Shown here in pieces: positions 22,672 through 38,300 of a DNA stretch of 64,000 nt. The stretch comes from Setoptus koraiensis (Eukaryota; Animalia; Arthropoda), in contig CM106585.1 of NCBI GenBank assembly GCA_048013815.1, positions 14,818,001 to 14,882,000 of the forward strand, written 5' to 3'. Under the pieces are notes generated by a model, which saw only the letters and a list, made by a program, of their open reading frames with translations, had not been told where the DNA came from and searched no databases. The translations under genes and the position numbers were made by a program. Positions within the stretch are counted from its first letter, which is position 1, and each line of letters starts with the position of its first letter.

Positions 22672-25611
22672 ATGGTTTCGGACAATTCAGTTTGTTACTC
22701 TATCGTGCACCGGCCAGGTGATTTTGAGAGCTGCAACGAGATCGAATTCAAAAAGGACTTCAGCAATGCCGACGTAGAAGTCAAAAAGGAGGCCCTCGAG
22801 GATCTCGTGCAGATGCTGCTGGATGGAGAGAAATTCCCACCGAATCTCCTCATGCCGGTCATTCAGTATCTATTGCCACAACAGGATAAACGTATCAAAA
22901 AATTATTGTTGCTCTTCTGGGAGATTGTGCCCAAACGGGGCCCAGATGGCAAATTGTTGCATGAGATGATTCTTGTTTGTGATGCCTATCGTAAAGACTT
23001 GGAACATCCCAACGAGTACGTCTGTGGTTCAACGTTGAGATTTTTGTCAAAATTGAACGAAGAGGAACTATTGGGCGAGCTTGTATCTCCCATAAGCCAT
23101 TGTCTCAAACGCAATCAACCCTATGCTAGAAAGAATGCCGTTTTAGCCATGGCCAAAATCTACATGAATTTCCCTCATTTATTGTATGATGCACCAACCA
23201 GAATTGCCGAGTACTTAGAACAAGAAAAAGATGAGGATTGCAGAAGGGACGCATTGTTGGCATTGATGCTTGTCGACCAGGATAAGGCCAAAGACTACAT
23301 GCACACTTGTATAGATAATATATTTAGATTGAACAGTTCCATACAACTGCTATTTGTGGAAACAATACTGAAGGTTTGCACCACTAATCGCGACCCTGTT
23401 GCTACCGAACAGTATATTGAGATATTATACAGTCTAATTGTGTCATCGTCGTCTCGCTCAGTAAGATATCAGGCAGCGGCCACCTTAATGCTACTGACGC
23501 GCTCGCCGCAAGCCATCAAAGAGGCAGCAAAATGTTTCATCGATATCTGCTCCAACGAAAGTGATAATAACGTAAAATTAATTGTCTTGGATAGTTTGAT
23601 CAATCTCAGAAAGACTCGCGGCGCTGAGCGTATTCTGCAAAATTCCATGATGGACATTCTTCGTATATTGCAAACCGCATCAGATTTAGAGGTAAGACAA
23701 AGAATATTAACGTTGTCGTTGGACCTGGTTACCTCTATTAATGTTCGCGAGATGGTCATGTTACTCAAGAAAGAAGTAGTCAGAATTTTTACCCCAAATG
23801 TGCTAGGTACTGTGGAAGAGACTACAAAATATCGACTTTTGCTTGTGGACACCCTCAATCAAATGTGTACCAAATTTCCAGAGGCGCTTGTTCATAGTGG
23901 TTTAATAGATACATTATTTGATCTACTCACTAGTGAGGCGATTGACGAGAAAACTTCTATGAAGGTCATCTCACTTATGAAAATATTCATGTTCAAAAAT
24001 CCAATCTATCAAACTGAAATTATTCGAAAAGTTCTGGAAACATTCAATCTCATTAAGACCACCAATCCATCAATACATCGTGGCCTATTGTGGTTGATGG
24101 GAGAGTTCTCAAGTACGACAAAGCAAATCGAAGATTCATACGATATAATCAAAGCATCCATTGGCAAACTACCTCTTGTAGCAACAGAGTTAGAGAAAGA
24201 GAAGGGAAACAAGGGTTCAGATGACCAGATTGAGCTAGAAAAGGGAACAGGTAAAGCTACTAATTCTAAGTTAGTCACTGCAGACGGTAGCTACGCCACA
24301 CAATCGGCAATTAGTGATTCATCTTCTGCTAACAAGTCCAGTATTAGTGATTTGCCTCCATTGAGATCCTATCTATTGAGCAATCATTTCGAAACAACTT
24401 CAGTGCTGGGTCACGCCTTAGTAAAAATGTGCTATAAATATCAGAATTTATCCATGCCTAGGAATGTTGTCAACAAATTTGTCGCAAAGTGCATGCTTCT
24501 ATTGGGGTCCATACTGAACATAGCACGCTCATCTTTGGATGACACAGAAGGCAATCCATTAATCATCGACAACGACCGCTATGAACAAATGTCATTATGC
24601 TTGAAGGTTTTGTTACTGATTTGTCGCGATGATCAACCATCTGTAGCAAAGTTAATGAGCAAGATATTCACAGAAGATATGAGGTCAGCATTAGGTTACA
24701 TGATCGATACAGTTGAAAAAGAAACTCTGGATGTTGCAATGGACAAGAAACAAATTAAGAAGGTTCAGTTTGATGACCGTATAGCATTCTCTATGCTCAC
24801 ACCTAAATCTGACAACATTATACTAGATCCAAACGAATCTCCATCAAATGATTCGGCCCTTGAGGAAGAGGGCGTGTTCAGTCCTAAGATGACAGACATA
24901 ATTCCACTTACTGGTCATACTGACCCAATATATGCTGAGTGCAAGTTCAGCGTCAACCAATATGATATTGGTCTTGATATACTACTCAAGAATCAGACTC
25001 AAGATACATTACAAAACGTTGCACTAGAGTTGTACACTCGTGGTGACCTAACTTTAATCAACAGACCCGAGCCATTAATACTGGGTCCTCTAGATTATAC
25101 TGAGATTCATACCTCTGTAAAAGTGGTATCAACTGAAAATGGCCGAATTTTCGGTAATATTGTTTACGATATCAGCGGCAACGCAAATATTCGTGAGCAA
25201 TTGATAGTTCTGAATGATATAAATATCAACATCACAGATTACATTAGGCCAGTAGCATGCAGCGATGAAGATTTCCGAGACATGTGGAGAGAATTCGAGT
25301 GGGAGAATAAAGTTATTGTTAAGACCCAATTGACAAATCTCAAGGAATATCTAGAGCACCTGATCAAATCAACCAACATGAAGTGCGTAACGCCTGAGCG
25401 GGCTCTTTCGGGCGACTGTTCGTTCCTTTGCGCTAACCTCTACGCAAAATCCTATTTCGGTGAAGATGCTCTTGTAAATGTGAGTTTAGACAAGGAAACG
25501 CCTGAATCAGTAGTTACTGGTCATGTTAAAATAAGATCGAGATCGCAAGGAATGGCACTAAGTTTGGGAGATAAAATTAGTTCTGCTCAAAATGCTGCTA
25601 AAGGAGCCTAA
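22672..25611 (+). CDS. COPB1: Coatomer subunit beta (beta-COP), intronless, ~979 aa
   Basis: Recognisable motifs IKKLLLLFWEIVPK, ILVCDAYRKDLEHPNEYVCGSTLRFL, LTGHTDPIYAE, FRDMWREFEWENKV and HVKIRSRSQGMALSLGDKI. First ATG at 22672; the ORF track starts at an upstream TTG. Confidence 0.97.
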   Translation: MVSDNSVCYSIVHRPGDFESCNEIEFKKDFSNADVEVKKEALEDLVQMLLDGEKFPPNLLMPVIQYLLPQQDKRIKKLLLLFWEIVPKRGPDGKLLHEMILVCDAYRKDLEHPNEYVCGSTLRFLSKLNEEELLGELVSPISHCLKRNQPYARKNAVLAMAKIYMNFPHLLYDAPTRIAEYLEQEKDEDCRRDALLALMLVDQDKAKDYMHTCIDNIFRLNSSIQLLFVETILKVCTTNRDPVATEQYIEILYSLIVSSSSRSVRYQAAATLMLLTRSPQAIKEAAKCFIDICSNESDNNVKLIVLDSLINLRKTRGAERILQNSMMDILRILQTASDLEVRQRILTLSLDLVTSINVREMVMLLKKEVVRIFTPNVLGTVEETTKYRLLLVDTLNQMCTKFPEALVHSGLIDTLFDLLTSEAIDEKTSMKVISLMKIFMFKNPIYQTEIIRKVLETFNLIKTTNPSIHRGLLWLMGEFSSTTKQIEDSYDIIKASIGKLPLVATELEKEKGNKGSDDQIELEKGTGKATNSKLVTADGSYATQSAISDSSSANKSSISDLPPLRSYLLSNHFETTSVLGHALVKMCYKYQNLSMPRNVVNKFVAKCMLLLGSILNIARSSLDDTEGNPLIIDNDRYEQMSLCLKVLLLICRDDQPSVAKLMSKIFTEDMRSALGYMIDTVEKETLDVAMDKKQIKKVQFDDRIAFSMLTPKSDNIILDPNESPSNDSALEEEGVFSPKMTDIIPLTGHTDPIYAECKFSVNQYDIGLDILLKNQTQDTLQNVALELYTRGDLTLINRPEPLILGPLDYTEIHTSVKVVSTENGRIFGNIVYDISGNANIREQLIVLNDININITDYIRPVACSDEDFRDMWREFEWENKVIVKTQLTNLKEYLEHLIKSTNMKCVTPERALSGDCSFLCANLYAKSYFGEDALVNVSLDKETPESVVTGHVKIRSRSQGMALSLGDKISSAQNAAKGA

Positions 25612-25747
25612 TCTTTTTCAATTAGATTGTATTTATCTTGATATACTATTAATAAAACAGATGAAACTACCAACAACAGAGTGACTTTCCTCAACATTTT
25701 TTTCACATTCCTCTGAACAAGAACATTTCGCAGATTTGCTCTATATT

Positions 25748-26177
25748 TCAAGTGAACGATGATTTTGCTTTTTCGACTATCGTTGATGACGTTTGGATAG
25801 GGTGATGAAGAAATCTGTCGACAAAACGAGAAGAATGTTTGACACTACAATTCCATTTGCGCTTCAAAACGGATTTATCTACGTAATTAGTAATATCGCT
25901 ATTGATCTTGGGGGTTGATGAAGGTGAAAGTTGTCGATATTTGGTGGTAGTGAAATTGATAAGCCTAGTCCATACATCTTTTTGCTCCTCGATCAATCTA
26001 TCGTCAACTTCATCCCATACTCTCTGCTGATAGATAGTGCAATATAGAAAAGAGGTAGGCAATCCATATCTGGAAGAGATTTGTAGGTGATATTAGAATA
26101 GTTGCATTGGCATGTTGGCGATATTGTAGTCACCTAAGGAGGACTTTAACTTACTTTATGATTTTTCTCAGGGCCAT
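25748..26177 (-). CDS. MICOS subunit MIC13/QIL1-like, 2 exons (26177-26155, 26069-25748), ~114 aa
   Basis: A GTAAGT...TTCCAG intron (26154-26070, 85 nt) joins ATG-GCC-CTG-AGA-AAA-ATC-ATA-AA in frame to the 104-aa ORF, giving MALRKIIKYGLPTSFLYCTIYQQRVWDEVDD...KRKWNCSVKHSSRFVDRF. Size, N-terminal hydrophobic segment, the 'VW' and the 'WN..VK' block resemble MIC13/QIL1 (recognised from memory, not searched). Confidence 0.62.
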
Positions 26178-26255
26178 TTTAAATATAGGCTGGATTCGAG
26201 GATGAACTCGTAACCGAAAGTCTTAAGTTGAGACACCGAGGTAAAAATAATGGTT
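26067..26255. repeat. Segment A (189 bp), direct copy at 28791-28979
   Basis: tatctggaagagattt...aaaataatggtt is present at both loci (offset 2724). It contains MIC13-like exon 1 and its intron. Confidence 0.95.
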
Positions 26256-26597
26256 ATAACAATGAGTGAACCATGAGTGATTGGAGACCAAAGAGGACAA
26301 TCATCTAGTTGTTATTTCTACTGTGTACATTTTCCAAATAACCAGTGACTTATTTGAAAGTCCGGCAGGGGCGCACGGAGCGCTTTAGACTGCGTGCACA
26401 AGCATAAAGTGTTAAATTAGATGTTTCTCTTCGTTGCTTACAAGCTTATTATACGCTGAAGCAAATAGATGCACGCGAATATTAACTACACGATGTATGA
26501 GAAAATCAAAGAGGGCTACCCTGACGGATCCGAGAGAAAGTAACAGGATGTGTATAGGAAAAAATGCACACAGCACAAATAAATGTTGCAATCAGCT

Positions 26598-26821
26598 GCT
26601 TTTCTCATGTTTATACGACACAGTCCATCCGGCATTTGAGTATATCCAGATGCTTTACAACTTTACCGAAAACTGGAGAAACTATTCTCTGTAGACCTCA
26701 AGTCTATGCCAAGATCCAATCATGTTTCAGGAACTATGGAATATTTGAAACAACATTTTCTGTCTTGTATTGTTTCGAAAATATCCGCGCTGCTATATTT
26801 ACCTTTGTAACGTATAAACAT
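26598..26821. repeat. Segment B (224 bp), direct copy at 28984-29207
   Basis: gcttttctcatgtttatacg...gtaacgtata is present at both loci (offset 2386), with two visible substitutions. Confidence 0.95.
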
Positions 26822-26824
26822 ACA

Positions 26825-28762
26825 ATGGTTATAATCAAACTACCCGAATCTGCGCCTCTCGATCCAGAGGATGAGGATTTCCTTGGCGTGATGAGTGAGA
26901 GCGAACCCGATGACGACGTAGATGATCTAGACTGGGAAGAGGTCAAGGCCAAAGACGATGACGACGATGAGGACGAGCTCGAGTTTAAAAGGATGCCCAT
27001 ATTGCCTGCCGAGGGTGTCGATATATTGATCGAGGACCATGGAAGTAGAAAGACAAAGAAGAAAAGAAAAGAGTTGGACCTGAATGAGATTGTGCGCAAG
27101 CATGTAAATAGGCAAAAAATTGCGTTGCAATTGAATAAACACAAACTCAGTCTTGTATTGTTTGTTGCCAGAGGATTGCGTTTATTGAAAATTGCCAGAT
27201 GTGATATAATAAGAGGTTTAGCTTTATCACTGGTGGATGATTGGTTTATGACACGTGCAAAATCTTCCACCACTATTAGTGACAAAAACAACAACAGCAA
27301 CAAAAAGGATACAATCGTCAGTAGTAAGCGGAAGACTAATGCGGCCAACAGCAAGAGGAAGGCCTCAGCTAGATCCTCAACAAAGAAGATTTGTCTCGAA
27401 GAGGAAATTGAAGATGTCACAGAGCAAGGAGAGAGTTCCACCGGTGAACGTGAATTTATTCTTGAATTCTTGGAATGGTTCAGCAAACGAGTGGCCATTT
27501 GTGACGATGACGACGTACGCGCGATGCACCTCAAAAATGCCTTCATGATCAATCTTCTCAATTGTTTCAGTGACCTACATGTGACCAGCCTCATCGAGCT
27601 TGTTTTAATATGTGCTGCCTGCTTGAAAGCTATAAAACCAAATCTACCTGTGAGAATTCTCAATATACTGCGTCCTATTACCAAGACGGCTAAACAGCCA
27701 GAAGAATCTGCTCCAGAACCCGCTGGAGTTCCAGAAAAACTCGATTTTTGGTTAGAGATATTCTCAGAGAGCGAAAACAAATGGATATGTGTTGACGTCT
27801 GCAACAATAAAATAGATGAACCAGAAGTTCTCAATGAACTCAACAAGCCCTTTTATTATTTGCTCTCGTTTGATATCGACCGCAATTGTATCAAACCAGC
27901 GGAGCAATACTATTGTCCAGATTGGTATGCACCAGCCTTCAAGCGCGAACGTTGCGATCCCAAATGGTGGCAGATGATCCTGGATGCCTACGGACCCTCA
28001 AAACAAAATGAAAAAGATGGTGCAGATGAGGCAAAATCTCAACAACTTCTAAACAAACAAGATCTACCTAAATCGGACAACGCATTCAGAAATCATCCTC
28101 TATACGTTCTACAGAAACACTTATTGAAGTACCAAGTGATTTATCCCCCAGATTGTGTGCCTGTTGGCTACTTCAAAGATGAGCCCATTTATCCTAGAGA
28201 TAGTGTTCACACATGTAGATCTCGCGAAACCTGGTTGCGTCAAGCGAAATCGGTGAAATTAGGCGAACAGCCCTACAAAATAGTTAAAGCACGCCCTAAA
28301 AAGGATAGATACACTGGCGATTATGTCAAAGACCTCCCATTGGAAATCTTTGGTGAATGGCAAACCGAAGCTTATGATCCACCAACCGCGCAGGATGGTA
28401 AAGTACCGCGTAATATTTATGGAAACGTTGATATGTATCAGCCATGCATGTTACCAAAAGGTTGTGTTCATTTAAAATTACCTGGCTTGCAAAAGATCGC
28501 CAATAAGTTAAATATAGACATTGCTGCTGCTGTCATAGGGTTCGATAGCCATTGCGGAGGTTATGGTTCTCATCCGGTAACTGACGGTTTTATAGTTTGC
28601 GAGGAGTACCAGGACACTCTGGAGGCAGCCTGGGATGAAGAGCAGATCAATGCTAGGAAGCGAGAGGAGGAAAAGCGCCAAAAGAGAATCTGGGACAACT
28701 GGAAGCGACTTTTGAAGGCAGCCATTATACGAGAAAAATTACGTGTTAAATACAAGGATTAA
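26825..28762 (+). CDS. XPC: XPC/Rad4 DNA-damage recognition protein, short copy (645 aa, internal 174-aa in-frame deletion)
   Basis: Near-identical to 30772-33231. Has LDFWLEIFSESENKWICVD, FRNHPLYVLQKHLLKYQ and VPRNIYGNVDMYQPCMLPKGCVHL (BHD1-3). The frame is also open to an upstream ATG at 26564 through segment B. Confidence 0.88.
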   Translation: MVIIKLPESAPLDPEDEDFLGVMSESEPDDDVDDLDWEEVKAKDDDDDEDELEFKRMPILPAEGVDILIEDHGSRKTKKKRKELDLNEIVRKHVNRQKIALQLNKHKLSLVLFVARGLRLLKIARCDIIRGLALSLVDDWFMTRAKSSTTISDKNNNSNKKDTIVSSKRKTNAANSKRKASARSSTKKICLEEEIEDVTEQGESSTGEREFILEFLEWFSKRVAICDDDDVRAMHLKNAFMINLLNCFSDLHVTSLIELVLICAACLKAIKPNLPVRILNILRPITKTAKQPEESAPEPAGVPEKLDFWLEIFSESENKWICVDVCNNKIDEPEVLNELNKPFYYLLSFDIDRNCIKPAEQYYCPDWYAPAFKRERCDPKWWQMILDAYGPSKQNEKDGADEAKSQQLLNKQDLPKSDNAFRNHPLYVLQKHLLKYQVIYPPDCVPVGYFKDEPIYPRDSVHTCRSRETWLRQAKSVKLGEQPYKIVKARPKKDRYTGDYVKDLPLEIFGEWQTEAYDPPTAQDGKVPRNIYGNVDMYQPCMLPKGCVHLKLPGLQKIANKLNIDIAAAVIGFDSHCGGYGSHPVTDGFIVCEEYQDTLEAAWDEEQINARKREEEKRQKRIWDNWKRLLKAAIIREKLRVKYKD

Positions 28763-28790
28763 AATGCGAAAATGATTGCGGCAACTAACT

Positions 28791-29207
28791 TATCTGGAAG
28801 AGATTTGTAGGTGATATTAGAATAGTTGCATTGGCATGTTGGCGATATTGTAGTCACCTAAGGAGGACTTTAACTTACTTTATGATTTTTCTCAGGGCCA
28901 TTTTAAATATAGGCTGGATTCGAGGATGAACTCGTAACCGAAAGTCTTAAGTTGAGACACCGAGGTAAAAATAATGGTTGTTGGCTTTTCTCATGTTTAT
29001 ACGACACAGTCCATCCGGCATTTGAGTATATCCAGATGCTCTACAACTTTACCGAAAACTGGAGAAACTATTCTCTGTAGACCTCAAGTCTATGCCAAGA
29101 TCCAATCATGTTTCAGGAACTATGGAATATTTGAAACAACATTTTCTGTCTTGTATTGTTTCGAAAATATCCGCGCTGCTATATTTACCTTTGTAACGTA
29201 TAGACAT
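28791..29207. repeat. Second copy of segments A+B, joined across a 342-bp deletion
   Basis: A (28791-28979) + gttg + B (28984-29207). The equivalent of 26256-26597 is absent. Confidence 0.93.
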
Positions 29208-30629
29208 TACCACGCTCACTACCTCCACGGACCGTATCTAGTGGCACAGAATCTGTGCTACAGATCAAGTAAGATGGAGTACCCGGTACACCATGTGCTT
29301 TTAGGGGGGTGGGGGTATCACTGTGGCGGTGTCGTTGTTGGCCGAAGGTACGCATGCACTGAAACTGAAACCCAGCATGTCCCACTATTTCCGTTCCACG
29401 ACTGCCACCGCGGTCACAACGTGTATAAAAAGGATCAAAAATCGAGGTTTTTATTCAATTACAGATTCAGTTAATAATGGCAACAGGTCGTCTCAAATTG
29501 TAAGTATAGCAATTATTCAACCCACCTAGTGTACACAGCATGTGTAGGATGATGAATACATAATTATACCACAAATTATATTTGATATGCACTTGATGAT
29601 AAATTTCTGCTGACTACCTCCCACCTTAAAAAATCGACAGAGCTCGAGAATTTTTCATGAAATTAACTAACCGGGTCCTTTCTCCAAACCCCACATCGCA
29701 GGTTGCGGCCTTCAGTATCATGGTCACGACGATACACAATAAAGGTACGTTTCAATACTGCTTAGCAGTCAATCTCACCAGAGCTTAAATGATGATAACT
29801 GATTTTGCCATATGAGGAATCGCTAGTCCACAGACATGAAATCACCAATACCGTTCCCACGTTATAATCTGAGTCAGCTCTTTGAAGACATCCAAAGTCT
29901 ATCCCATCGCTCCCAAATGATATGTCTAAAATGTTATGTCTCTTTCTCACCCAATATTTTTTCTGTGCGCATTTTTAAACAGGTAAGTCTCTCTCGAAAG
30001 GATCCGATCGCTCAATTCGGGCTCAGAGTAGATGTAATCGCACATCTATCAAGGATTTGTCTGTTTCTACACAAACTTCGTTAGCTCAATTCATCCCCTG
30101 AACAAATAATGGTACGAATGGAGCCGTATCTGGGCCTGTTAAATTCCATTCTGATGAAAGAGTCAACACTTGCCCGGAACCAAGGAACTAGGTTTTGTCC
30201 TTCGGGAGGCAGTGTGGTGTGTTGCGAGCATGGTCAGCAAGTGACCGCGTAGAGCATGCCTTTTTAAAGCAAATTTTTTAAAGTTTACTCAACATTTAAA
30301 TAAACAGTTTTATCCTGCAAGTCGTTTAGTGCCCCCTCGAAATCACTTCATCTTTGCCGCGCATTTGGTTTGATTGTGCACAATTTTCGTGCACTATTCA
30401 CCAAATATCCATGAGTTCTCCACAGACGAATGCCTCTGTGTAGGTGAACGAATCGCTCAACGAATCCTAACACATCCCAGACCGCCTACAGTGTATTCAC
30501 ACGTGATTGGTGGTTTTTGCCGTTTATTTATCTCGATCTATCTTGTTGCACATGATACCACGTGCAAATAAAGGAAAAATAACTCATTGTCCATTGCCAT
30601 TGTATGCACGATTTATTTGTTTGTTATTT

Positions 30630-30753
30630 GTGAGTGCTATAATATCAGATCGCCTAATTCTTCGAGCATTATATTAACTACTATTATCATATGTCGACCC
30701 ACACAATGCTCAGGACAGAAGAGGAACAATTGTGATCACATTATTTTCGCCAG
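30630..30753 (+). other. Probable 5'-UTR intron of the long XPC copy
   Basis: GTGAGT donor at 30630 and ttattttcgcCAG acceptor 18 nt before the ATG. The 124-nt length matches other introns here. Confidence 0.45.
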
Positions 30754-30771
30754 ACAACTTCGGCCAATACA

Positions 30772-33231
30772 ATGGTTATAATCAAACTACCCGAATCTGC
30801 GCCTCTCGATCCAGAGGATGAGGATTTCCTTGGCGTGATGAGTGAGAGCGAACCCGATGACGACGTAGATGATCCAGACTGGGAAGAGGTCAAGGCCAAA
30901 GACGATGACGACGATGAGGACGAGCTCGAGTTTAAAAGGATGCCCATATTGCCTGCCGAGGGTGTCGATATATTGATCGAGGACCATGGAAGTAGAAAGA
31001 CAAAGAAGAAAAGAAAAGAGTTGGACCTGAATGAGATTGTGCGCAAGCATGTAAATAGGCAAAAAATTGCGTTGCAATTGAATAAACACAAACTCAGTCT
31101 TGTATTGTTTGTTGCCAGAGGATTGCGTTTATTGAAAATTGCCAGATGTGATATAATAAGAGGTTTAGCTTTATCACTGGTGGATGATTGGTTTATGACA
31201 CGTGCAAAATCTTCCACCACTATTAGTGACAAAAACAACAACAGCAACAAAAAGGATACAATCGTCAGTAGTAAGCGGAAGACTAATGCGGCCAACAGCA
31301 AGAGGAAGGCCTCAGCTAGATCCTCAACAAAGAAGATTTGTCTCGAAGAGGAAATTGAAGATGTCACAGAGCAAGGAGAGAGTTCCACCGGTGAACGTGA
31401 ATTTATTCTTGAATTCTTGGAATGGTTCAGCAAACGAGTGGCCATTTGTGACGATGACGACGTACGCGCGATGCACCTCAAAAATGCCTTCATGATCAAT
31501 CTTCTCAATTGTTTCAGTAACCTACATGTGACCAGCCTCATCGAGCTTGTTTTAATATGTGCTGCCTGCTTGAAAGCTATAAAACCAAATCTACCTGTGA
31601 GAATTCTCAATATACTGCGTCCTATTACCATGAGGGCCGATATCATACCAAAGAACGCCAACAACGTAACTCAGGATATTAACGAGAGTATTTTTGGCGA
31701 TCAATCAACTAGCAACTGTGTAGAACAATCAAAGAAGGAAAAAGATGCACCGCCGTCAATTGAAGAAAATCATTCCTCGCATCTCCTCACCGACGGCCAG
31801 AGAAAACTCGATATCGACTTTTTAATCGTTTCCAATTTAGACATGGCCCCAGAAAGTTCGGAAAAGGCTAAGAAAGTGTCCACATCTAAGAAGGTGAAGA
31901 AACCTGAGCCACATGAGCAGGAACCAATCAAAGAGCCCACCAAGCGGAGAACCTCCAGAGTTACTAAGGTCAAGAGTGAAACGTATCGAGAGGCTCCCGA
32001 GGTCGAGGAAGAAGATGAGCCTAGGGCAAAAAGGAGAATCAGCAAAGCCAAACCAAAGACAGATACTAAGAAGGGTAAGAAAAATATCAGTGATGACGAA
32101 GAAGAAGTTAACAAAACTAAAAAAAGGAATAGTGATACGAAATCAAGCAAAAAGACGGCTAAACAGCCAGAAGAATCTGCTCCAGAACCCGCTGGAGTTC
32201 CAGAAAAACTCGATTTTTGGTTAGAGATATTCTCAGAGAGCGAAAACAAATGGATATGTGTTGACGTCTGCAACAATAAAATAGATGAACCAGAAGTTCT
32301 CAATGAACTCAACAAGCCCTTTTATTATTTGCTCTCGTTTGATATCGACCGCAATTGTATCAAACCAGCGGAGCAATACTATTGTCCAGATTGGTATGCA
32401 CCAGCCTTCAAGCGCGAACGTTGCGATCCCAAATGGTGGCAGATGATCCTGGATGCCTACGGACCCTCAAAACAAAATGAAAAAGATGGTGCAGATGAGG
32501 CAAAATCTCAACAACTTCTAAACAAACAAGATCTACCTAAATCGGACAACGCATTCAGAAATCATCCTCTATACGTTCTACAGAAACACTTATTGAAGTA
32601 CCAAGTGATTTATCCCCCAGATTGTGTGCCTGTTGGCTACTTCAAAGATGAGCCCATTTATCCTAGAGATAGTGTTCACACATGTAGATCTCGCGAAACC
32701 TGGTTGCGTCAAGCGAAATCGGTGAAATTAGGCGAACAGCCCTACAAAATAGTTAAAGCACGCCCTAAAAAGGATAGATACACTGGCGATTATGTCAAAG
32801 ACCTCCCATTGGAAATCTTTGGTGAATGGCAAACCGAAGCTTATGATCCACCAACCGCGCAGGATGGTAAAGTACCGCGTAATATTTATGGAAACGTTGA
32901 TATGTATCAGCCATGCATGTTACCAAAAGGTTGTGTTCATTTAAAATTACCTGGCTTGCAAAAGATCGCCAATAAGTTAAATATAGACATTGCTGCTGCT
33001 GTCATAGGGTTCGATAGCCATTGCGGAGGTTATGGTTCTCATCCGGTAACTGACGGTTTTATAGTTTGCGAGGAGTACCAGGACACTCTGGAGGCAGCCT
33101 GGGATGAAGAGCAGATCAATGCTAGGAAGCGAGAGGAGGAAAAGCGCCAAAAGAGAATCTGGGACAACTGGAAGCGACTTTTGAAGGCAGCCATTATACG
33201 AGAAAAATTACGTGTTAAATACAAGGATTAA
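30772..33231 (+). CDS. XPC: XPC/Rad4 DNA-damage recognition protein, full-length copy (819 aa), intronless CDS
   Basis: Acidic N-terminus, a transglutaminase-like domain split by a K/E/R-rich disordered loop, BHD1-3 motifs, and a C-terminal helix (WDNWKRLLKAAIIREKLRVKY). Confidence 0.96.
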   Translation: MVIIKLPESAPLDPEDEDFLGVMSESEPDDDVDDPDWEEVKAKDDDDDEDELEFKRMPILPAEGVDILIEDHGSRKTKKKRKELDLNEIVRKHVNRQKIALQLNKHKLSLVLFVARGLRLLKIARCDIIRGLALSLVDDWFMTRAKSSTTISDKNNNSNKKDTIVSSKRKTNAANSKRKASARSSTKKICLEEEIEDVTEQGESSTGEREFILEFLEWFSKRVAICDDDDVRAMHLKNAFMINLLNCFSNLHVTSLIELVLICAACLKAIKPNLPVRILNILRPITMRADIIPKNANNVTQDINESIFGDQSTSNCVEQSKKEKDAPPSIEENHSSHLLTDGQRKLDIDFLIVSNLDMAPESSEKAKKVSTSKKVKKPEPHEQEPIKEPTKRRTSRVTKVKSETYREAPEVEEEDEPRAKRRISKAKPKTDTKKGKKNISDDEEEVNKTKKRNSDTKSSKKTAKQPEESAPEPAGVPEKLDFWLEIFSESENKWICVDVCNNKIDEPEVLNELNKPFYYLLSFDIDRNCIKPAEQYYCPDWYAPAFKRERCDPKWWQMILDAYGPSKQNEKDGADEAKSQQLLNKQDLPKSDNAFRNHPLYVLQKHLLKYQVIYPPDCVPVGYFKDEPIYPRDSVHTCRSRETWLRQAKSVKLGEQPYKIVKARPKKDRYTGDYVKDLPLEIFGEWQTEAYDPPTAQDGKVPRNIYGNVDMYQPCMLPKGCVHLKLPGLQKIANKLNIDIAAAVIGFDSHCGGYGSHPVTDGFIVCEEYQDTLEAAWDEEQINARKREEEKRQKRIWDNWKRLLKAAIIREKLRVKYKD

Positions 33232-33269
33232 AATGCGAAAATGATTGCGGCAACTAACTTTTAATTTTA

Positions 33270-34080
33270 AGTGAGTACAGTAGTGTGGTGCTATTTCATG
33301 CTATTGGACGAACAAATAATAAAGCATCGAATGAACGAAAACAATTCCAATCATCGATATTATACCAATAAAGCTTCCTTGCTTTCAGATTCAGAAGTGA
33401 ACCTAAACTTCTGGTCTGGCAAACTTGCATCTTTCCTGTTCAGAATATACTTTTTGTTTGATTTAACCGTCTGTTGCAAAGTTACTCGGATCCACAATTC
33501 TCTGATTGTGTCTTAATTGTGGTTTGTGCCAGCTCCATAAGTAATCAATCGGAGCACGATTGTATCGGTGGCAATTTCAGCGATAAGCAATCAAACATCA
33601 ATCATCAGCCACTTCAGGGCCAGTTATGAATAATTTAACATTGAGAAAGGAGAAGATATCTGTTCGAGATAGTGATGACGATGATGATGATGTGTTACAC
33701 TGTTTCACTAGACCTCGTGCCTGGAATAACAAATTTGACCCTCACTATATTATATTCTTATATGATCTCTCTAAGCAATGGTGGAGGGCAAACTTTCAGT
33801 GGAATGCCGGGTGATAATGGAATTGCTGCATAGACACCCGAAAATGATAACAATTCTATAAATCGTAACCAGTTGAATAACTTGTTGCTCAATGACAACC
33901 CACCTGCGTACGGAAAAGGCCTAATTATACATCCAGATGCTTTTCAACTTTACCGAAAGGACACTCTGAAGAATCGGCTCTCGACAAACTGTGACAATTA
34001 CTCGATTCTATTTATTCTATTCAATTTCTATCAGATTGTGGACGCAGTGAAATACATTCATTCACAACTCTTTTATGCCG
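33270..34080 (+). pseudogene. Degenerate fragment of the PERK kinase domain
   Basis: Collinear with 48050-48880; confident core 33465-34070 vs 48291-48880. Examples: aaccgtctgttgcaaa/aaccgtcttttgcaaa, ttcactagacctcgtgc/tccactagacctcgtgc, tatacatccagatgc...gaaaggacact, [14 protein letters not shown] vs [14 protein letters not shown]. It has frameshifts and stops and no HRDLK. Confidence 0.85.
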
Positions 34081-35301: not shown

Positions 35302-38300
35302 ATGTACTCGTACGAGCGCGATTCGCGCCTCCACATGAAGGGTCACTACGAAACCAGCACTAGTAGTAGCCCCACCAGAAGAGGCAGAATCGAAAGAATA
35401 GAATCGCCCATAGCTAACCGCCAAAGTATCACCAACAGTATGAGCAGTGATCGTTTCAACGAGACGAGTCGTAGCCACAATAGATCAGTGTTAGAGGAAA
35501 GATTGCCAAATAATGGCCGATACAACCATATGAACGATATCACCCATCAAACTGCTACTCACGAAATGGATCATTTAGATTCAGACGATGTTAAATATCA
35601 CACCAAAACACAAATGGCGCAAGCCTCTCAAGAATCAAAAGAGCTGTATAGAAGTTCTCAAGATCGCGGCGGACTGAAAACAGTGAAAACAAGACGCATT
35701 GTCAAGAAAACCACCACCATAACCCGCGGTGAGAATGAAAAATTGGTAAGTATTCGGGCTATCTATGATTCATTGAATCGAAACTCCAACGGAGTAACTG
35801 ACTAGCTGAGAATATGTCGAGTCAGCAATGGCTAAACAGCTAATGGCGTTTTCTTCGGAATGGGGCTGATTGCAATCCGGGCAAGACTTGTGCGATAATT
35901 TCTTTTTGTTAGTTTGGGCAAAAATCTCAAATGAGCCTTGAGAGTTGAAATATTTCTCGAATACTATCTGTTAGCAGTGCGTATTCCTGCAATAGGCTGA
36001 AATAGCCCAATACAATCGCGCCAGCCGATAGCAATATCACCCAAACTGTTCGTCTTGTTGATCTCGACTATTGCTCGATAGAGGAGCGTCGGTGTTTTGA
36101 GGCCAGTGGGTTTTGTATCGTTTCTCTGTATTGTTTTACCTAATCGAGCAAATATTGTTTGGATTATCAACATTGTAGGAGGAGCCGGTCGACGACAAAG
36201 CTGAGCTTCGCGAAGAGCTCAGAAAGCATTTGGAATCGATCAAAAAGGAGTTGAACATTTTGGAGAAGCGCATCGATAATATGGCTCCAGTTGGCGACAA
36301 TATGCACACCCTTCGAAAGCAATTGATAGAGATGGAAGACTTCGAGCGACACTTGAGTAGGGTTCGCAGCAATTTGGACGAGGTAATAGAAATTGGTGGC
36401 GATTTTCTGCGCAACGACGAGGAATTGCGGCCCCAATTGAGAGATTGCCAAGAGCAATTGGCTCGTATTGAATCGAAGGCTTCGAAGAGATTGCGCGACA
36501 TTGACGCGGCTATGAATCGTGTGGACGCGGCCGATGCAGCCATGACACGATTCAACATTAAATTGGACGCATTGAAAAAGGAATTGAACGATCTGGAGCA
36601 TCGATTGGACTCGATGGCGCCAGTGGGCAAAGACTTGAAGACATTGCAACGTCAATTGAGCGAGATGGAGGACTTTGATCGTCGCATTCAAGTGGCCCAT
36701 GGTCATTTGGAGGAGATAGTGCAATTGGCAAATGATATGATACGCCAGGATTTGGTTAAATCGCCCAATGTTCTGCTAGATCAAATAGCCGAATGTCGTG
36801 CCCAATTGGAGCGCATCGAGCAGCGTGCAGCAAAACGGGCCCGCGAAATAGCCGATGCTCTGAATAAATGCGACGCTTCTGCGGCTGCCATGGCCAAATT
36901 CAATGTCCGCTTAGACGCCATCCGAAGGGAACTGGACGATCTTGAGCACAGACTCAATTCGATGGCCCCAGTGGCAAAGGATTTGCCCACGTTGCGCGAA
37001 CAATTGAAAGAGATGGAAGACTTCAATAAGCGCGTAGATAAATGCCGCCAGAACCTACAGTCGGTGATTGAGTTTGGCGAGGAGCTGATAGCCAAAGATC
37101 TGGTGCCCAATGTGAGACACTTGCGCGATCAATTGCAAGACTGCCAGGATCAATTGAAACGAATTGAGGCGCGAGCCGCCAAGAGAATGCGCGACATTAT
37201 GGACGCTTTGGGTCGCGCAGATGCCGCCGAGGCCGCATGGAGAAAATTCCAGCTGAAACTAGACGCAATCAAGAAGGAATTGGACGATCTTGAGCGCCGC
37301 CTAGACGGCATGGCGCCCGTAGGCAAAGACATGGACACACTGAGGGCCCAATTGGCCGAAATGAAGGACTTCGAGCAGCGGCTCAACAAGTGCAGACGCA
37401 ATTTGGAGGCCCTGAACGACTTTGGCGAGGACCTGATAATGCAGGGACTCATTGATAACCCGCGCCTATTGAGAGAGCAAATTCGCGACTGTCAATCACA
37501 ATTGGCCAGATTGGAGGCGCGAGCCGCTAAGAGATTGCGCGAAATTCAGGACGCCATGAATCAGGCCGAGGCGCGCGAGGCAGCGCTGAGAAAATTCCAG
37601 CTCAAATTGGACGCCATCCAGAAGGAATTGGACGATCTTGAGCGCCGCATCGACAACATGGCGCCTGTGGGCAAAGACATGGACACACTGAGGGCCCAAT
37701 TGGCCGAAATGAAGGACTTCGAGCAGCGGCTCAACAAGTGTAGGCGCAATCTGGCCGATCTGGCCGATTTTGGCGAGGATCTAATTCGCCAGAATCTCAT
37801 TGAGAATCCGCGTTTGTTGCGCGACCAAATTAAAGAGTGCCAGGCTCAATTGGCGCGCATTGAGGCCAAGGCAGCCAAACGTTTGAAGGCCATTCAGGAC
37901 GCCATGAACAGATCGGAGCAGGCCGAGGCAGCCATGCAAAAGTTCCGCATTAAATTGGACGCAATCAACAGGGAATTGGAGGAATTGGAGCGACAGGCAA
38001 AGAATTGGTCGGCACCAGGACGCGACCTGGCAACAATAAAGAGACAAATAAGCGACTTGCAAGAATTCAAATCGAGACTCACTAAGGTGGCCAGAATGAT
38101 AGACGAATTGACTGAATTAGGCGAGAGAATGATACGCGAAAATCTAATTGAGGAACCACAAGAGTTGCGTCACGAAGTGAAGCAATGCCAAACAAGATTA
38201 GCCCATCTAGAGGAGCTAGCCAAGGGCAGAGAGAACGAGCTCAATTGGGCCTTGAGCAAGGTGACCGAATTCAACAAATTGGCCGAAGATTTGAGCCAAT

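Follow-up and report, generated by a model that had tools for sequence, protein, structure and literature searches.

A tandem duplicate of XPC lacking the predicted disordered TGD loop in the mite Setoptus koraiensis

Proteins of the XPC/Rad4 family carry an N-terminal acidic Trp motif that binds p62/Tfb1 of TFIIH. Fungi contain Rad4/XPC paralogue pairs with divided roles, namely, that involving Rad34 in S. cerevisiae and rhp41/rhp42 in S. pombe. The transglutaminase-like domain (TGD) of yeast Rad4 is continuous. A disordered middle (M) region, residues 325-512, interrupts this domain in human XPC and is absent from Rad4 (PMC8938288). This region binds unacetylated histone H3 tails, and recombinant human XPC without it binds RAD23B and supports cell-free dual incision equal to that of the wild type (PMC8938288). 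The same protein accumulates more poorly at UV damage and removes less of the 6-4 photoproducts in cells without UV-DDB (PMC8938288).

Here, we describe two copies of XPC, designated XPC-short and XPC-long, in a 64,000-nt window of the Setoptus koraiensis genome (contig CM106585.1, positions 14,818,001 to 14,882,000). The fungal pairs are ancient and diverged, whereas the mite copies are ~99.8% identical, lie in tandem, and differ mainly by one deletion. The mite proteins, at 645 and 819 aa, compare with 940 aa in human XPC, which is of the same family and fold. XPC-long has its TGD interrupted, at the position seen in human XPC, by a K/E-rich loop predicted to be disordered, although no alignment could be made between the mite loop and the M region, and XPC-short has 17 residues there. 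The best functional analogy to XPC-short is the engineered human XPC lacking the M region, in which the disordered insertion is likewise gone and the folded domains are kept. That protein, which has lost H3-tail binding and shows reduced UV-DDB-independent repair in cells, is a vector-expressed laboratory construct, whereas XPC-short is a natural genomic copy whose deletion also takes a conserved IIPK motif, beyond an M-type loop. Rad4, which has no M region, gives structures that match the XPC-short model at an identity of only ~17%. We met no report of a young tandem XPC pair differing by loss of a loop, in reading that did not include a specific search of the literature on XPC duplications.

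Tandem duplication of the XPC locus

When the region was compared with itself by BLAST and in a repeat search, two XPC units were found head-to-tail. Three runs, each from a different study (X2, X5, and X7), supplied Logan contigs that were placed on 26000-31999, together with those of a run labelled RNA (X11); the latter had zero reads of this organism and hence was no test of expression. The features of the two units, by position in the window, are as follows.

26067..28791, plus strand: duplication unit 1, 2725 bp, comprising segment A, U1, segment B, and XPC-short (BLAST; X5 contig over 28791)
26067..26255, minus strand: segment A, identical to 28791-28979 (A'), with the start codon, exon 1, and intron of gene M
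26256..26597: U1, 342 bp, in copy 1 only, where copy 2 has GTTG (present in X2, at depth 144, and X5 contigs)
26598..26821: segment B, gene M 5' leader DNA, matching 28984-29207 (B') with 2 differences
26825..28762, plus strand: XPC-short reading frame, intact, 645 aa (ORF, Pfam, AF2, Foldseek)
27683..27684, plus strand: deletion joint, with 1-nt microhomology and ends not intron-like (X7 contig, X2 graph branch)
28791..33260, plus strand: duplication unit 2, 4470 bp, ancestral arrangement (BLAST; contig L001 of a relative)
29208..30766, plus strand: U2, 1559-1560 bp of native upstream DNA absent from copy 1 (BLAST, X7 contigs)
30772..33231, plus strand: XPC-long reading frame, 819 aa (ORF, Pfam, protein searches, AF2)
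31631..32152, plus strand: 522-bp segment without counterpart in XPC-short, aa 287-460 of XPC-long (BLAST, AF2, alignment)

The order in unit 2 is A' (28791-28979), GTTG, B' (28984-29207), U2, and XPC-long, and U1 has no other match within the window. Across ~2400 aligned nt, the copies differ at 4 positions (0.17%). Copy-versus-copy BLAST paired 26820-27690 with 30767-31637 and 27683-28791 with 32152-33260, the second pair being 100% identical over 1109 nt. The gap in XPC-short is thus an in-frame one of 522 bp, or 174 codons, as the initial annotation of this DNA had claimed. It can be placed at 31631-32152 or at 31630-32151, because one A is common to both sides of the joint, which reads ...TTACCA/AGACGG... 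(the slash marking the joint). Upstream of the gene, segment B is fused 3 nt before the XPC-short ATG; the corresponding 1560-bp gap leaves 5 nt in front of the ATG, shows microhomology of 2 nt, and has ends of the TA..AT type.

Several smaller sequence elements were recorded alongside. One B/B' difference (26817 versus 29203) changes GTATAGAC to GTATAAAC, a TATA-like word that lies 8 nt upstream of the XPC-short ATG and is too near to serve it. A 28-nt motif (ATCCAGATGCTTT[A/T]CAACTTTACCGAAA) is present at 26643-26671 in B, at 29029-29057 in B', and at 33931-33958, ~700 bp downstream of XPC-long. A loose end at 26671 in X2 was considered as a structural variant and rejected, as it is this motif, shared with 33931-33958. 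A large downstream gene contains, at 36425-37768, three direct repeats of ~300 nt that have diverged to 65-80% identity. A search of 25600-33600 against Rfam gave no match.

With two internal segments absent from one copy, and with U2 containing introns, a processed retrocopy or alternatively spliced product might be proposed, in which the 522 bp and the 1560 bp were introns lost via RNA. However, neither absent segment has GT-AG or AT-AC ends: the 522-bp piece would begin with TG or AT and finish with AA. The 1560-bp gap is out of step with the mapped splice sites, and the copy retains the unspliced 85-nt gene M intron in segment A, lacks a poly(A) tract at its end, and sits in tandem with exact breakpoints. 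In addition, the reading frame stays open through the 522 bp, and part of this stretch is conserved in a relative. A loss via RNA is therefore highly improbable, and the view that this is a genomic deletion and not an intron, put forward beforehand, agrees with the ends, the tandem units, and the presence of the joint in contigs.

The contigs also bear on whether the two copies are separate. In X2, the depths, which are contig depths and not read counts and which the tool warns are not copy numbers, were 123 for the single-copy flank, 144 for U1, 113-128 for U2, 111 for the 522-bp segment, and 230-260 for the pieces shared by both copies. These values fit two copies per genome, not two alleles. 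Had the assembler placed two alleles of one locus in tandem, shared segments would be expected at 1x and copy-specific segments at 0.5x the flank, whereas they stand at 2x and at flank depth, respectively. At 28797, the total depth in X2 was 381 versus 249 for the shared A contig, and the ~133 extra at this position therefore belongs to a contig specific to the tandem joint. This joint, at 28791, is also spanned by an X5 contig (27683-28827). The near identity of the copies and the pooled, visibly polymorphic samples do speak for alleles, as does contig 17 of X7, which joins the left flank directly to A of the copy 2 type, GTTG, B', and U2. However, that X7 joint has CT..AC ends, as a canonical minus-strand intron would, and is readable as splicing instead of a DNA haplotype. 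We therefore consider an assembly artefact of this kind to be improbable.

The joints inside copy 1 were likewise found in contigs. The X2 graph branches exactly at 31630/27683, where the shared contig 30767-31630 (depth 259) ends and the 522-bp contig (depth 111) begins, so that the remaining ~148 must exit via the short joint. An X7 contig (27573-27993) spans the deletion joint with zero mismatches, and in another X5 contig, starting at 26800, B is fused to the ATG. The contigs listed for X2 and X5 did not include the junction-specific ones of these two runs. These data confirm that the duplication and the deletion are real and that the locus is a tandem segmental duplication.

In X5, contig depths were 35-75 for short-specific contigs and 7-11 for long-specific contigs, with a flank at 29.5. 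These values suggest further copy-number or structural variation at the XPC locus in the X5 population. U1 stood at ~2.5x and long-specific DNA at ~0.3x the flank depth in this run, and one X5 contig connects 27002 back to 25897. Within U2, an alternative haplotype with six linked SNPs at 30030-30106 was seen in X2 (depth 40/159) and in X5; the sequenced samples are therefore polymorphic pools. Exact-protein look-ups (short forms of 645 and 732 aa, the long form, coatomer, and a junction fragment) gave no match, nor did the 139-aa junction fragment in a word search. In JGI metagenomes, the junction and a neighbouring shared 36-mer were both absent.

The excised loop and the predicted fold

Both copies contain PF03835, PF10403, PF10404, and PF10405 (Rad4 TGD and BHD1-3) above the Pfam gathering thresholds. 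XPC-long matched human XPC over aa 412-817 (phmmer E 4e-94) and matched Rad4 with an E of 1e-24. At the N terminus, DWEEV of the mite protein aligns to human ENDWEEV, and the C-terminal W/L helix aligns as well.

In the AlphaFold2 model of XPC-long, a strand at 276-282 is followed by a semi-confident stretch, with the IIPK segment above a pLDDT of 50, and residues 297-478 fall below 50. The deleted aa 287-460 are thus nearly exactly the predicted disordered loop plus ~10 better-ordered residues (287-296). In XPC-short, LRPIT is fused to KTAKQPEE and 17 residues are left before EKLDFW, consistent with the fusion near LDFW that had been described. The XPC-short model has a mean pLDDT of 76 and retains all helices and strands, with an 18-residue low-confidence linker at 287-304. 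When this model was compared with known structures by Foldseek, 8ebw, 8ebv, 8ebs, and 9pcp ranked first, followed by 6cfi and 2qsf, all at probability 1.00, and the E value versus human XPC was 8e-39. A comparison of the model with Rad4 and XPC, which the initial annotation had proposed, accordingly returned human XPC cryo-EM chains first and Rad4 crystals next. These predictions support XPC-short as a member of the XPC/Rad4 family with a plausible fold.

The nearest proteins in a large collection were ~26 XPC sequences of 600-675 aa, one of them (P0005) named Aceria tosichella; among such eriophyoid-type mite orthologues, the size of XPC-short is typical. These matches place the DNA in an eriophyoid-type plant mite whose genes have few introns. 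The closest relative, P0001 (747 aa), is 92% identical over the aligned part. Its contig, L001, could be aligned with a portion of the 522-bp segment and with the ~18 bases that immediately precede the XPC-long ATG, and gave no alignment to segment B. Because these matches are to long-type sequence, XPC-long with U2 is ancestral and XPC-short is derived. Between RPIT and EKLDFW, the loop has 191 residues in XPC-long, 120 in P0001, 29-70 in the other mites that could be parsed, and 17 in XPC-short. On these lengths, the 191-aa loop is a recent expansion in this lineage, and a short loop is close to the norm for related mites. The loop itself (31631-32203, aa 287-477 of XPC-long) is K/E/S-rich and fast-growing.

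The related mites also retain [L/M]RA-IIPK directly after RPIT. Residues I291, I292, P293, and K294 of this motif are invariant in 27/27 mite sequences, and P293 is also kept in 7/9 non-mite sequences; XPC-short, in contrast to all of these orthologues, is without MRADIIPK. The proposal that the deletion leaves all structured domains intact thus stands for the four Pfam domains and for the predicted helices and strands and fails for this conserved motif. The deletion does map to the place of the human M region, where the TGD is split, as had been claimed. It was further suggested that the loop carries regulatory sites of the human type. The position is equivalent, but the mite loop is a recent lineage expansion that fails to align to the human one, and human modification sites are therefore not transferable to it.

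Outside the joint, the coding sequences show exactly two differences, the L/P and D/N pairs noted initially. The first (26928, T/C) gives L35 in XPC-short and P35 in XPC-long, and the second (27572, G/A) gives D250 and N250, respectively. Both are non-synonymous, with 0 synonymous differences, and both are derived in XPC-short. P35 is invariant in 27/27 mites and lies just before DWEEV, adjoining its conserved tryptophan, where XPC-short has leucine. Copy 1 in X5 retains the proline codon at this position, and P35L is therefore polymorphic.

The coding sequence offers 1542 non-synonymous and 393 synonymous sites; on these numbers, two changes would both be non-synonymous with a probability of 0.64 at an omega of 1 and 0.08 at an omega of 0.1. 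The two changes lean weakly toward relaxed constraint and are too few to measure it. For a random 522-bp deletion, 55/1936 positions would lie wholly inside the loop, and 1/3 of lengths would be in frame. All three rearrangements spare the structured coding sequence, a pattern that suggests selection on the frame, survivorship, or one complex rearrangement that spared it by chance.

Regulatory context and transcription

The flanks of the duplicated unit involve a second gene and the poly(A) signals of XPC-long:

25748..26069, minus strand: gene M exon 2; the left duplication breakpoint lies 3 nt inside the exon
33318 and 33367 (33318..33372), plus strand: AATAAA signals of XPC-long, outside the duplicated unit

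Segments A and A' contain the start codon, the first coding exon, and the 85-nt intron (GTAAGT..CAG) of gene M. This minus-strand gene (25748-26178 and 28794-28902) has two exons encoding ~114 aa, and its exon 2, searched alone, matched no Pfam family. Three splice joints were seen, all in X7 only: 26069 to 28879, with CT..AC ends that read GTAAGT..TTCCAG on the minus strand; 29499 to 29702, with GT..AG ends (GTAAGT..CAG) on the plus strand; and 29742 to 29981, with GT..AG ends (GTACGT..CAG) on the plus strand after the cut is shifted by 2. Because these three joints are canonical and X7 covers exons only, with no intron coverage, X7 is probably cDNA.

In one X7 contig, the gene M leader of copy 2 (29249-28879) runs directly into exon 2 at 26069. 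This means either that some haplotype is unduplicated or that splicing of gene M now spans a 2809-nt intron that holds the whole XPC-short copy; other introns seen at the locus measure ~85-240 nt. U2 holds the far end of the gene M leader and, on the plus strand, spliced exons (29470-30133, with introns 29500-29701 and 29745-29982), which are either 5' UTR exons of XPC or a separate short or non-coding transcript.

These spliced exons are absent upstream of XPC-short. At the other end, the duplicated unit stops 29 nt past the XPC stop codon, excluding both AATAAA signals from copy 1, and the one related word common to both copies, ATTAAA, overlaps the stop codon. From the 1560-bp loss and the end of the unit, it follows that XPC-short is without the native promoter, the native 5' exons, and a canonical poly(A) signal. 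Loss of the native 5' region had been named as a risk in the initial annotation, and U2 is indeed gone from copy 1.

The X7 contig that spans the deletion joint has a depth of 4.8, near the 3.3 of the long-specific segment. It is possible that XPC-short is transcribed; the contig could be sense, or it could be antisense RNA begun at the duplicated gene M 5' end in A'.

Status of the short copy

In the history that we propose, a segment of the genome of this eriophyoid-type mite containing the XPC locus was duplicated in tandem very recently. Copy 1 would then have been reshaped by end-joining or template-switch events with 0-2 nt of microhomology. One would have removed 1560 bp upstream, so that leader DNA of the minus-strand gene M now abuts the XPC-short ATG; another would have removed 522 bp within the gene and excised the disordered, TGD-splitting loop; and copy 1 has the 342 bp of U1, inserted or ancestral, where copy 2 has 4 bp. 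The XPC-short frame stays intact, with a predicted XPC/Rad4-like fold. We infer that the copy is under relaxed constraint and has at most weak or incidental transcription. If translated, it should, by analogy with human XPC lacking the M region, show RAD23B binding, normal lesion recognition in vitro, and weaker chromatin targeting.

A functional counterpart of that human protein is the main alternative. XPC-short might be transcribed, by read-through or with U1 or B supplying a cryptic start, then translated and kept by selection as a loop-less sensor with altered chromatin targeting or turnover. Such a history would accommodate the intact 645-aa frame, the in-frame deletion confined to the loop, the halt of the upstream deletion 5 nt before the ATG, and the retention of all domains in the AlphaFold2 model. 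It also draws on the probable cDNA contig across the joint, on the in vitro activity of human XPC lacking the M region, and on the X5 depths, in which short-specific DNA is deeper than long-specific DNA and which are unexpected for a simple duplicate fixed at 1:1. Yet the copy has no native promoter, 5' exons, or AATAAA signal; it has lost a mite-invariant motif and carries P35L beside the conserved DWEEV tryptophan; the X7 contig may be antisense, with transcription beginning at the gene M 5' end that was duplicated; and the copies, at a divergence of 0.17%, are too young for any trace of selection. We regard this functional alternative as doubtful. That XPC-short is an expressed, selected form beside the full-length gene, and perhaps the predominant XPC in X5-like haplotypes, seems to us unlikely.

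The initial annotation proposed that duplication plus deletion had recreated a streamlined, possibly deregulated NER sensor. Its first half holds, in that the deletion in a duplicated gene is real and the predicted fold is kept. The second half is weakened, since related mites ordinarily have short loops and since an invariant motif, the upstream region, and the poly(A) signals are lost. A working streamlined sensor is less likely than a young, regulation-stripped, and probably redundant copy. We therefore favor, with some confidence, the view that XPC-short is a very young duplicate stripped of its regulation, probably redundant or decaying rather than a working sensor.

Should XPC-short prove to be both expressed and active, it would parallel in nature the human construct without the M region, and the disordered TGD insertion would be dispensable in a whole animal. 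The two copies would then form a long/short, separation-of-function pair of sensors with which the role of the loop could be probed. For the present, the main value of the locus is as a clear case of a tandem duplicate captured at a very early age, just after end-joining rearrangements.
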